From Salpingoeca rosetta (Eukaryota > Protista > Choanoflagellata), in contig JAWQFM010000010.1 of the NCBI GenBank assembly GCA_033442325.1, positions 354,930-418,929 of the forward strand: a stretch of 64,000 bases of DNA. The letters are read 5' to 3'. Made by a program: the position numbers and the translations under genes. A model generated the notes under the pieces. That model searched no databases. It saw only the letters and a program-made list of their open reading frames with translations, and was not told where the DNA came from. This document shows positions 46,875-54,622 of the stretch, one piece after another (position 1 is the stretch's first letter; every line of letters begins with the position of its first letter).

Positions 46875-49800
46875 CTAGATGACGCTTGTCTGCACGAGCG
46901 GATGGCGTGGCTTGGGCTTGTCGCTGCCGTGGTGTGCAGCTTCGGCACCAGCCTTTGCAGCCACAGCTGTGATGGGTACGTCAGCCAGGGTTACGCAGCC
47001 AGTGCCATTGGGAACGTGCTGGGAACCCGAACTAACACGCATCGGCGGCGGGTGAAGCGGCTGGTCATGAGGCAAAGGCTGTTGCTGCTGCTGGTGCTGG
47101 TGGTGCTGGTGGTGGTGCTGGATGTGTTGTCCTTGCTGTGGTTGCTTATGCACCTGCTGGGACTGCGCCTGTGACTGCTGTGGTTGAAGTTTCTGGTAGT
47201 GAGGCTGGCCCAGTCCGGCAGCGTGCGACGTTGCTGGAGCAGCACCCACTGGAAAACTGTTCTCTGCAAAGTACATGGGGGCTTGTGCATGCTGCTGCTG
47301 CTGCTGCTGCTGCTGCTGCTGCTGCTGCTGCTGCTGCTGCTGCTGCTGCTGTTGTTGTTGTTGTTGTTGTTGTTGTTGTTGTTGTTGTTGTTGTTGTTGT
47401 TGTTGTTGTTGTTGTTGTTGTTGTTGTTGTTGTTGTTGTTGTTGTTGTTGTTGTTGTTGTTGTTGTTGCAAGAGGGCGTTGTGAATCGCCAGCACCTCTG
47501 CGTTGATCCTCGGGCTGGGCGACTCGCTCTGACTGCTGTCCGTGGGCGTGGCTGTCATGCTGTTCATGTTCACGTCGTGCACGCGTTGGCTGTTCATCTG
47601 CTGCTGCTGACGCCGCCACGAGGCATCCCACAGCGCCGCTTCCAGCTCAGCGTGCTTCCCTGCCACAGTCGTCGTCGGCTGCTGCTGCAGCAGTTGGTTC
47701 CCTGTGCTTGGTGGCACCGCAGAGGGTTGTGTCAGATGTTGGAACTGGGCTAGCAGATTGGCTGCTGTCAGCTGCTGTTGCTGCGGCTGCTGCTGGTTGT
47801 TGTTGCTGTTGTTGTTCTGCGCGGGCTGCGCATACATGTCTTGCACATGCTGCACCGTGGCAAACTGGTTGACATCCGCAAGCGACTGTAAGCCATGCAC
47901 GCCGGTTGACCCGCCAAAGCTTGGCGTGCGTCGGGTGCCATTGACGCCATACACCCCGTTGCCAATCGCGTCCATCTCATCGGTGAGGGCCGAGCGAGGC
48001 CCACGCGTCCCCACGATATCAAGCACAAGCGCCAACTGCTGGGTGAGCTGGGCAAAGGTTGGGCGGGCGTCTCTCGGCAACCAGCAAGACTGCATCACCA
48101 TGTACAGCTCATCCGGGCACGTAAACGGCCGCTCGAGCACCAGCCCTTGCTGCACCGCAATCACCACCATGTTGTTGGGCATTCCGCTGTATGGCAGCGT
48201 CGACGCACTGCACATGTGTACGTGTGTGGTTTGTTGAGTGGGTGAGTAGTGAGTATGTGTTGTGCATGAGTGGGTGAGTGGGTGAGTGGGTGAATGAGTG
48301 AGGTGGGTGGTGGCCAATTCAAAGACAAAAGATATCTTCAACTGGCAGCAGTGAACCAGAGCAGGTGAAGACGTACTTGGTGGCGATTTCGTACATGGTG
48401 ATACCAAAGCTCCACACATCGCTGGCAGAGGAGAACTGACCAGCACAGAACAAAGAGACAACAACACCCAGCACAACGAAGCAGCGAGTAAGCTCATGTG
48501 TACAGGGCTCAGGCTGCGGGCTTCCCAGGCGTTTCCGTCAGACACGCAACCTCAAACACATGCGAACAACGCATGCGAACAACACATACGAACAATTGCA
48601 CAAACACACAAGTCCACACACAAGTCCGCACACACACACGCACGCACATAAGCACGTCCACACACACACACACACACACACTCACACACACATAAGCCCA
48701 TCCACACACACACACGCACACACACACCTGTCCGCTGAGGGCCTCTGGAGCCGTCCAGCGAATGGCCATCTTGGACATGGGGCTTGCCTCGTACTGGGGC
48801 GTGTTCTTCGCCAGCCCAAAGTCGGCAACCTTGCACCGCCGGTCGCCCGTGACGAGGATGTTGCGGCAAGCAAGGTCCCTGTGCAGCGCCCCAGCCTCCG
48901 TCAGCGTCTTCATGCCGTGCGCAATGTCCAGGCAAAACTGCACCTTCTCCTGCCAGCTAATCTCGCGGCCCTGCTCAAGCTGGTCCTGCAAAAACGTGCT
49001 CAGGGACCCCAGCTCGCAGTACTCCGTGACCAGGCAGTACGGGCGGCCACGCGTGATGACGCCGACAAGCTGCACAATGTGCGGCTGCCCCGCAAACTGG
49101 GCCAGCACCGCCGCCTCCTGAAGAAACGCCTCCTCGTCACGCGGGGTGAGGTCGTCCTTGAGCACTTTGATCGCCACCTTGAAGGCATCCGGCACGTCCT
49201 CGTCGCGCGGCAGCTCCGGCCGGAACCGCGGCATGCTCTCGTACTGGCCTGTCAGCACGGGCTCACGCTCGTACCCGTGGCGGTGGCGGTTGTGGTGGTG
49301 GTGGTGGCCCTGCCCCTGGCCCACTGACCGCTCGCTCGCGCTGATGTATGTGCCAGAGTGCTGGCTCTCTGCGTAGTGGTAGCTGGAGCCACCACCCAGG
49401 TCGTGGGCGGCAGTAAGGGGGCCGGCCTTGCCACTGGCGCTGGCCTTCGTTGGCAACACGTCGTGTGCCGCTACGGACCCGTTGCTGCTGCTGCCGCCGT
49501 CCTGCAGGTCGCGGTGTCTCTGACCACTGCGGTGTGTGTTGGCTGTGCTGATGACGCTGCGTGCACCGGCACCGCCGCCGTTGCTGCTGGACACCTTGGC
49601 CAGGGCGAAGCTGCCGTCATCGTCATCAGCAGCACCATCATGGCCGTTGCCCGGGCGGCCGCGGTGCTTGCTGTTGTTGCTGCTGCCAGTGTGGCTGTGT
49701 GCGCCGTTGCTGTTGCCAGCGTGTTTGCGGATTTCGCGGTCTGCCCGCGAGTAGCGCAGCGCCTTCTCCAGCACAATGCCCTTGTACACGGTGCTGAAGT

Positions 49801-52800: not shown

Positions 52801-54622
52801 CACGCACACACACGCACCGCGATTGTGGCATTTGTGTTGCGGAGGGACGTCATGACATCACTGAAGCTGATGCGGGAGATGGTCGACGAGAACAAGAGCG
52901 CATTTCTGCACACCAGTTGCATGCAACGTTTTGTGGTTGGCGCAGTAGCATGAGTACATGATAACAACAGCACACATGAAGATGCATGAAGTCGTGTTGT
53001 TGTTTGTGTTGTTGTTTGGTGTATGTGTGTGTGTATGTGTATGTGTATGTGTATGTGTATGTGTATGTGTTTTGTGTATGTGTGTGTGTGTGTGCGTGCG
53101 TGGAAGCACAATATCCCCGTGCATACCCAAAGGAAAGGCGGTCGAGGCGGTGCAGCTGCAGGATGGTGGAGACAACATCATCAACGCCATCGGCAGCGAT
53201 AAGAAACACGTGGTGGTGGTCGCCAACGGCATCCGTACACTGCTCCTCTGCAAACGGGCTCTCCTCACGCGAGATCCAAAGGCCCTGTATGTGTGTGTGT
53301 GTGTGTGTGTGTGTGTGTGTGTGTGTGTGTGTGTGTGTGTGTGTGTGTGCGCGCGTGTGCGTGTGTGTGTGTGTGTGTGTGTGTGTGTGTGCGTGTGTGC
53401 GTGCGTGTGTGTGTGACAATGCGCAGACTCGATGCGAAACGGGAACCGACAGCAATACAAACAACACAAACAGCAAGCTCTAGCAGCAGCAGCAAGCACC
53501 AGCAGCAGTGGGGGTACTACTGGTTCGTGCGCTCACCTGCGTGAAAGCGTCCCGGAAGTGGGATGCAACCTCTGACACAACGCACGTTGGGGTAACGAGT
53601 GTGATGGCACTCCAATACCACTTGGAGGCAAGGTCTCTGAACGTGGCCACGACGTCTTCCGCCGGATGAAAGGATTGAAGAACTGATGGTGATGCGAGAA
53701 ACAGAATGCCTGGTGAGTGTCCTGTGCGACAAAATGGCGAGGATGCACCTGCAAATGTTTGCTCACAGCTACACACATGCACACACGCACACATGCACAC
53801 ACTACGCGTACACACATGCACACACATACAGACACACATACACACACGCATACACACATGCACACACATACAGATACACATACACACATGCACGCACATG
53901 CAGATACACATACACACGTGCACGCACACATACACACATACACACATACACACATACAAACAATCACCACCTGCAGTATCGGCGGTGCTGGAAGGGCGAA
54001 CGGCGTTGCTGACTTCGTCGATAAGCAGCTCGATGCGCTTGTCGAAAGAGGGGTGCCTGGCATCCAGGTGTGACAGGGCTTGCTCCTCCACCGTTATCGT
54101 CTCCAAGCTGAGCATTGCGCTGCGGTTGCCGCACGCTGACTCTCCATTCAGGTACTGCACCAAGGCATCTACTGCTTTCAGCTCATACTGCATGAAGCGC
54201 ACAACACAGTGTCATTCAGGTTTTGAGTACATCAAGGTTTGTGACACGCGAGCATGTGGCAGGGCAAGCGGACGCAGCACTCGAAACAGTTTGACATGTT
54301 TTTAAAGATACGCAACAGAGAGCGATGACACACATAATGTACATGCTTATGATACACACACATACAAGCTTAATGATACAAACTTAATGATACACACATA
54401 CACACGCACACACACGCACACACACGCACACACACTCACACATTCACATGCATACACACACACATTCACATGCACACACACACACACCTGTAGGAGTTCT
54501 GCTGGTGTGGTGAGGTTGACAGCGACATGCTGCGCTGCTGTTGCTGATCCGGCCAATTGCGTACATACGGCCACCGCGGTGATGATGAAGACAGCAGCGA
54601 CACTTGGTATTGCCGAAGCCAT
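46875..54622 (-). CDS. Receptor tyrosine kinase with Venus-flytrap (ANF-receptor/PBP type 1) ectodomain, Venus-kinase-receptor-like architecture, ~1713 aa, 11 exons
   Basis: Phase-consistent exons: 54622-54488 (signal MASAIPSVAAVFIITAVAVCTQLAGSATA), 54187-53971, 53721-53537, 53284-53127, 52905-52818, 52558-52199, 51888-51764, 51506-50943 (AVIGPVLSTC...LPIVSPAVSAREFSDTTAHPYFFRI), 50645-48728 (TM VVGVVIGAVAVVGLAVGMMALVY; IGTGNFSTVYKG; VAIK; HRDLACRNIL; DFG; IRWTAPE), 48435-48377 (SDVWSFG) and 48207-46875 (CPDELY..MQSCW..RPTF, Gln-rich tail). Confidence 0.92.
47292..47470 (-). repeat. Coding (CAA)n(CAG)n repeat, about 60 Gln, in the RTK tail
   Basis: (ttg)n and (ctg)n tracts on the + strand, in frame with the final RTK exon. 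Confidence 0.93.

Follow-up and report, generated by a model that had tools for sequence, protein, structure and literature searches.

What lies between the signal peptide and the Venus flytrap of a choanoflagellate receptor tyrosine kinase, and is it a second flytrap? The question is raised by a gene in a 64,000-nucleotide stretch of the Salpingoeca rosetta genome (assembly GCA_033442325.1, contig JAWQFM010000010.1, positions 354,930 to 418,929 of the forward strand), here called the window, in which all positions below are counted. The gene occupies 46875..54622 on the minus strand, and its splice model, built from the sequence, has 11 exons and a coding sequence of 5169 nucleotides (nt) for a protein of 1722 amino acids (aa). 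An initial annotation of this DNA had proposed that about 390 extra residues ahead of the clear flytrap could themselves be a flytrap, and that the protein could be a two-input or allosteric sensor of small molecules. Our results showed that these residues, here called the N-domain, form a conserved extracellular domain of the same gene, and that the membrane-proximal module is a true flytrap. The reading that we prefer, to which we assign a probability of roughly 0.45, is a single type I receptor tyrosine kinase gene with a true proximal flytrap and a distal N-domain that is slightly more likely than not a diverged flytrap-like fold without the canonical ligand motifs.

The N-domain comprises 386 residues from exons 2-7 (51764..54187, minus strand, aa 46-431) and reads as a conserved alpha/beta-type extracellular module, possibly a degenerate flytrap. 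Its homologues in the genome (55.4 Mb, 68 contigs) were found by relaxed tblastn, and models of the paralogs were then built. In three paralogs (contigs C34, C13 and C1), homologues of exons 3-7, unchanged in order and strand, were found at 1.5-3 kb on the upstream side of the flytrap exon, and each of the three genes opens with a signal peptide. The intron phases are identical (the first coding part is followed by phase 1, exon 4 by GG/GT, and both exon 5 and exon 6 by phase 0) and the exon lengths nearly equal (158; 88-91; 354-360; 125-140 nt). In all copies exon 7 ends in phase 2 (AG/GT), and exon 8 supplies the third base of the codon. Among the three close paralogs, identity was 46-47% in the N-domain versus 38-43% in the flytrap, and the N-domain is at least as constrained as the flytrap.

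A further homologue was found on a Tara Oceans contig (ENA ERZ908253, 2756 bp), on which the counterparts of exons 2-7 follow one another as in the window gene; 36% of the residues are identical over 366 aa. Exons 2 and 3 are fused there, the remaining exon lengths are identical (158, 88, 360 and 125 nt) and the phases are the same. The contig comes from a marine eukaryote whose introns are likewise rich in GT/CA. Because the sequence is conserved in five genes, exons 2-7 are coding. These data show that the N-domain is a real, conserved, flytrap-sized extracellular domain of the same gene.

This domain is rare. An exhaustive phmmer search with exon 6 against 1.8 billion representative sequences returned one true relative, the open reading frame (ORF) on the Tara contig; a five-sequence exon 6 profile searched against the protein database returned only that ORF again, and two scans of Joint Genome Institute (JGI) metagenomes, with an exon 4 pair and an exon 6 pair, yielded no further homologues. 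Among the collections searched, the N-domain is thus held outside the S. rosetta genome by one metagenome contig only. Within the genome, a fifth gene on contig C11 (L174:6359-8813) retains, ahead of its flytrap exon, stretches that resemble exons 4 and 7; these remnants are weak (HMMER expectation values (E) of 0.2 and 0.06; tblastn 0.007). In the C1 paralog, a perfect 34-nt tandem duplication in exon 6 (L178:4491-4558) shifts the frame, while the C34 and C13 copies read through; either the C1 gene has recently become a pseudogene or the assembly is wrong at this place. As judged from these sequences, the choanoflagellate family consists of four clear members and one remnant in the genome, plus one marine metagenome homologue.

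The membrane-proximal module was easily recognized. It covers 50039..51506 on the minus strand (aa ~432-822), taking in exon 8 together with ~200 codons at the start of exon 9, so that intron 8 falls within it. In Pfam, which was searched one exon at a time, exon 8 matched ANF_receptor (PF01094) over the cut-off (3.6e-10) and Peripla_BP_6 (8.8e-07). A profile built from this gene and the three paralogs was aligned by hhalign with 30 bacterial Peripla_BP_6 sequences at a probability of 97.6% and a P value of 3e-12 over 249 columns, and because of this match the module is assigned as a true flytrap (periplasmic-binding-protein (PBP) type 1 / ANF_receptor). The nearest solved chains are PDB 3lop and mGluR8. 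The flytrap strings AVIGP (aa 490-498), LPIVSP (aa 512-517) and HPYFFR (aa 530-535) are present. By eye, a Ser/Thr that follows GP (in AVIGPVLST) and an Arg in HPYFFR can also be recognized. These are ligand landmarks of class C receptors and of Venus kinase receptors, the latter being activated by L-amino acids through a conserved Ser and Arg of the flytrap; the proximal flytrap keeps landmarks of the GP..S and FFR types. Word searches of protein databases with the flytrap region gave no match; these searches were limited by a length filter.

Several observations point to a related fold in the N-domain. To begin with, it has the length of a flytrap (about 390 residues each). When N-domain profiles were compared with seven family profiles (Peripla_BP_6, Peripla_BP_4, the LacI-type Peripla_BP_3, SBP_bac_3, SBP_bac_1, an aminotransferase and an epimerase), Peripla_BP_6 was the best of the seven for both the two-sequence profile (P 0.07) and the five-sequence profile (P 0.13). 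The alignments with Peripla_BP_6 extended over 85-131 columns and were near-diagonal, and those with the unrelated folds (SBP_bac_3, SBP_bac_1, aminotransferase and epimerase) covered 4-28 columns, with P 0.33-0.79. A profile of exons 3-4 searched against 177,635 PDB sequences had flytrap chains of GABA-B R1 as its top seven matches (E 0.13). This match covers 52 residues, with a helix, a W.W strand, a second helix and a G-I-E-I/V-x-F-R strand at the start of lobe 2, and its register is that of the hhalign alignment. About 51 residues further on, the GABA-B R1 chain has GKKYVWFLIGW, and the paralogs have KKGNVLLWLP at an equal distance. In the ESM atlas, all ten of the best family-bearing neighbours of the Tara exon 2+3 piece belonged to ANF_receptor clusters (score 0.80). 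AlphaFold was given stop-free read-through ORFs, which hold only parts of the N-domain and are interrupted by a translated intron; the first of the two partial models showed beta-alpha alternation in the aligned part.

Against a flytrap-like fold stand the following results. None of exons 2-7, taken singly, matched any Pfam family. The hhalign values just given for Peripla_BP_6 are not significant, nor was that for the N-domain profile against the flytrap of its own family (P 0.17), whereas the true flytrap reached 3e-12 at equal profile depth. Block shuffles equalled the real hhalign score in 1 of 25 and 5 of 25 trials. With HMMER, profiles of Peripla_BP_6 and of the family flytrap hit no N-domain exon at a meaningful E-value. 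The GABA-B match (E 0.13) lies at the noise level of the other exon profiles. These profiles, built from the first ~80 residues, from exon 4 by itself and from exon 6, drew unrelated PDB matches or none (E 0.2-0.8), among them a Kelch protein (0.62), an uncharacterised protein (0.21) and the vWA domain of RGLG (0.83), the last by way of the strand HVLLIAADG. The ESM-atlas neighbours of exon 3 from the window were KaiC/DUF7504 fragments (score 0.88), and exon 6 had no neighbours in the atlas. Both partial AlphaFold models were poor, with predicted local distance difference test (pLDDT) scores of 47 for the first and 44 for the second. Finally, the W.W strand of the paralogs is preceded by only ~95 residues, few for a full first lobe.

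The profile test has a reach of its own, which can be read from the true flytrap: against the other two PBP1 subfamilies it gave only P 0.055-0.09, so the test is blind to kinship at the level of the fold. From a very distant flytrap, an hhalign value like that of the N-domain would be expected. The pointers to a flytrap-like fold agree in direction, each at noise level. Concerning the extra ~390 residues of the initial annotation, a conserved flytrap-sized domain of the same gene is well founded in the exons and phases of the paralogs, and the flytrap identity did not obtain significant profile support. The degenerate landmarks had a similar fate: the strings KWYWSAITLV (aa 160-169) and HHVFLIAADG (aa 212-221) are present, and they lack statistical support as flytrap motifs. 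Support for an internal duplication was also sought in the intron positions, which gave none: measured from the HVFL strand common to both modules, the exon 4/5 boundary of the N-domain and the exon 8/9 boundary of the flytrap differ in position by ~24 residues. Taken together, we put the chance that the N-domain has a flytrap-like fold a little above even, and the balance leans slightly to a strongly diverged fold of this type that would have lost the canonical ligand motifs.

The most serious alternative is that the N-domain is another Rossmann-like alpha/beta fold, a lineage-specific fold, or a pair of smaller domains such as vWA-like or RecA/KaiC-like ones. Its role would then be in adhesion, protein-ligand binding or oligomerisation, and the receptor would have one small-molecule sensor. 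We consider this a strong competitor, though short of an even chance. In its favour are the lack of a significant match to any flytrap profile at a depth where the true flytrap is found, and the short region before the W.W strand in the paralogs; the absence of a GP..S or FFR-type motif from the N-domain agrees with this alternative, as does the higher atlas score of the KaiC/DUF7504 fragments for exon 3 compared with ANF_receptor for the Tara piece. The top PDB match of the exon 4 profile also falls on its side, as it is the vWA strand YHVLLIIADG of the RGLG ligases, but this match extends over just 16 residues (E 0.83), and the paralogs (LFANG, LFAAG and LFATG) lack its Asp. The alternative is further opposed by the flytrap family topping the seven families with long co-linear alignments, by the 52-residue GABA-B match in the expected register, and by an N-domain as long as a flytrap. 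As a separate observation, the HHVFLIAADG string of the window (53186-53215), which reads YHVLLIAADG on the Tara contig (L007:623-778), resembles the vWA/copine strand YHVLLIIADG of RGLG E3 ligases.

Another possibility is the one raised by the initial annotation, that both modules are working flytraps, each binding a small molecule, and that together they form a two-input or allosteric sensor whose output is phosphotyrosine signalling. All points that favour a flytrap-like fold favour this possibility as well, the constraint on the N-domain equals that on the true flytrap, and a conserved Cys pair and N-glycosylation sites in the N-domain are expected of a functional extracellular domain. However, reading of the sequence showed that the N-domain is without the GP..S and FFR-type ligand-contact motifs that the proximal flytrap keeps, and it resembles flytraps no more than at noise level, which would be expected for a module freed from the constraint of ligand binding. 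A two-input sensor is therefore unsupported, and we regard a pair of working flytraps as unlikely. In the papers that were searched, no tandem-flytrap kinase is described.

The weakest alternative, that exons 1-7 are a gene for a secreted protein and exons 8-11 a separate kinase without the N-domain, draws on the TAA that read-through of the exon 7 donor meets at once (AG/GTAA), so that an unspliced message would end there, but read-through in the paralogs meets no immediate stop, and we rejected this alternative as very improbable because three paralogs keep the N-domain exons directly upstream of the flytrap exon with the same order, strand and phase-2 junction, and because exon 8 has neither an ATG nor a signal peptide of its own, the latter being needed by a type I receptor. 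Weakly in line with one gene, eight public runs from two studies, whose run type is a guess, contained 0.61-0.67 of the sampled words of 48700-54650, near the exon fraction of 0.635.

Under the preferred reading of one receptor with a true flytrap and a diverged distal N-domain, a mechanism can be drawn from what is known of such receptor families. The proximal module is taken as the sensor because only this module keeps the ligand-contacting landmarks of a flytrap. A small molecule, to judge by the ligand class of related flytraps, would close the proximal flytrap, and the closure would reorient a receptor dimer, itself presumed, across the single transmembrane helix. The Eph/Src-type kinases would then phosphorylate each other in trans, and tyrosines in the ~200-aa kinase insert and in the tail may become docking sites. 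The N-domain would act as an accessory clamshell, in dimerisation or modulation, rather than as a second independent sensor.

The exon structure on which this reading depends was consistent throughout. On the minus strand, exons 1-4 lie at 54622-54488, 54187-53971, 53748-53537 and 53284-53127, exons 5-8 at 52905-52818, 52558-52199, 51888-51764 and 51506-50943, and exons 9-11 at 50645-48728, 48435-48377 and 48207-46875. All introns are GT...AG, the phases are consistent and there are no internal stops, so the 11-exon model of the initial annotation was reproduced exactly, and all of the strings quoted there were found in the translation where they had been placed. The introns have 220-310 nt and are rich in GT/CA microsatellites, intron 2 being GT-rich at 53768-53904. 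Exon 3 has an alternative in-phase acceptor 27 nt downstream, and at the exon 8/9 junction a second donor/acceptor pair, likewise in phase, is available a few codons off; both are minor uncertainties that leave the domain findings unaffected.

The remaining parts of the protein also agreed with the earlier description of a signal peptide, a clear flytrap, one transmembrane helix and an intact tyrosine kinase, which was borne out by translation, motifs and Pfam. The first in-frame ATG (54622) is followed by a signal-peptide-like hydrophobic N-terminus in exon 1 (54536..54622, aa 1-29, minus strand), and the paralogs begin alike. In the translation, a single transmembrane helix of 23 hydrophobic residues, followed by basic residues (R/K), was read at 49937..50005 (aa 834-856, minus strand). 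The tyrosine kinase domain (48018..49813, aa 898-1342, minus strand) is split over exons 9, 10 and 11 and was matched by Pfam PK_Tyr_Ser-Thr in exon 9 (8e-46) and exon 11 (2.3e-08). Its catalytic motifs are complete: the Gly-loop (GxGxxG) at aa 898-906, VAIK at aa 1108-1116, HRDLACRN at aa 1208-1215, DFG at aa 1228-1232 and IRWTAPE at aa 1248-1254. The activation loop carries a single Tyr (..PQYEAS..), and the motif that follows is WTAPE.

The nearest solved kinases were EGFR, the Eph receptors and FGFR3, followed by Src/Abl-type kinases and M. brevicollis RTKC8, and neither the insulin receptor nor the IGF1 receptor was among the best 60 solved kinases. By this comparison, the kinase is Eph/EGFR-like and not insulin-receptor-like. 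A low-complexity insert of ~200 aa (49184..49786, aa ~907-1107, minus strand), an open frame inside exon 9, separates the Gly-loop/beta2 from the catalytic lysine of VAIK. All four paralogs have a long low-complexity insert at this site, several hundred aa long in C34; the position between the Gly-loop/beta2 and the catalytic-lysine strand is unusual for a kinase insert. The protein ends in a Q/N/H-rich C-terminal tail of 380 aa (46875..48017, minus strand; stop codon TAG at 46877-46875). Inside a longer Q-rich stretch of this tail, a (CAA)n(CAG)n tract at 47277-47474 encodes a pure run of about 60 glutamines.

Other flytrap genes were seen nearby and elsewhere in the genome. In the window, a divergent second flytrap receptor, RTK-B, lies at ~59300-64000 on the plus strand, beyond a CIAO1-like WD40 gene. 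Its flytrap starts directly after the signal peptide, without an N-domain, and a transmembrane-like stretch lies near 63.8 kb; a kinase domain, if there is one, would fall outside the window. A run of N was observed at ~57990-58100 of the window, within the region of the CIAO1-like gene. On another contig, two near-identical, oppositely oriented flytrap genes (C9:1818500-1827500 and 1795500-1804500) encode a flytrap, an EGF array, a transmembrane helix and a kinase-homology domain like that of guanylyl-cyclase receptors, and each copy is preceded by an identical 459-aa ORF without a Pfam match.

What is new here is the conserved N-domain in a family of flytrap receptor kinases, and its rarity. 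Flytrap-coupled tyrosine kinases are candidates for sensing amino acids or bacterial metabolites through phosphotyrosine signalling in the unicellular relatives of animals. The ectodomain of the whole paralog family has a second conserved module that is as large and as constrained as the flytrap, in a receptor family almost absent from public protein and metagenome collections. If the N-domain is a degenerate flytrap, it would parallel, in a kinase context, the logic of a binding and a non-binding clamshell known from GABA-B receptors and ionotropic glutamate receptors (iGluRs). If it were a second functional flytrap, a unicellular relative of animals would have receptor tyrosine kinases with tandem flytraps, which would combine two small-molecule signals or use one pocket as an allosteric site. 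Because S. rosetta can be manipulated genetically (PMC7314544), such ideas about the receptor are testable.

In comparison with known systems, the Venus kinase receptors (VKRs) of invertebrates share the most with this gene: a signal peptide, an ANF_receptor-type flytrap, one transmembrane helix and an active-looking tyrosine kinase (PMC3703292, PMC4026697, PMC2680970), and a presumed logic in which closure of the flytrap on a small ligand activates the kinase. The insulin-receptor-like kinase of VKRs carries the motif M(A/S)PE and is autophosphorylated at a YY site (PMC3703292), whereas the activation loop of the kinase here has a single Tyr and its motif is WTAPE. The ectodomain of VKRs is a single module, whereas an N-domain of ~390 aa is added here; the ~200-aa insert between beta2 and the catalytic Lys and the 380-aa Q-rich tail are also features that VKRs are without. 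The earlier label of the gene as VKR-like is thus apt for the architecture and not for the kinase, whose single activation-loop Tyr, WTAPE motif and nearest solved relatives (Eph, EGFR and FGFR) all differ. Since the insulin-receptor-type kinase with YY and M(A/S)PE is absent, we did not file the gene as a VKR, and the VKR-like design probably arose here by an independent assembly of flytrap and kinase.

Within the choanoflagellates, the combination of a flytrap and a tyrosine kinase has already been published with a VKR-like architecture, as UTK12 of M. brevicollis and RTKS of S. rosetta (PMC3703292, PMC4026697), so the single-flytrap receptor tyrosine kinase is not new, as the initial annotation had rightly suspected (PMC3703292). 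The choanoflagellate papers mention this architecture only in passing ('unpublished') and describe no N-terminal domain. The kinome table of S. rosetta lists 5 RTKS genes (PMC4054682 Table S6), close in number to the 4 genes and 1 remnant with the ectodomain described here. RTKS has been described as 'very similar to InsR' (PMC3703292; PMC4054682), a likeness that was not seen in our kinase comparison. Given the same organism group and the same flytrap and tyrosine kinase architecture, the gene probably belongs to the choanoflagellate RTKS family.

A non-binding clamshell stands beside a binding one, for assembly or allostery, in the amino-terminal and ligand-binding domains of iGluRs and in the GABA-B1/B2 flytrap pair. 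A degenerate PBP-type module next to a ligand-binding one is also what we propose for the N-domain, by analogy only. iGluRs and GABA-B receptors are channels or G-protein-coupled receptors in which the fold of the second clamshell is proven, whereas in the S. rosetta receptor the fold is putative and the output is a tyrosine kinase. The natriuretic-peptide / guanylyl-cyclase receptors likewise combine an ANF_receptor flytrap, a single transmembrane helix and an intracellular kinase-fold domain. Their kinase-fold domain is a pseudokinase that regulates a cyclase, whereas the gene studied here has no cyclase and keeps HRD, DFG and APE intact.

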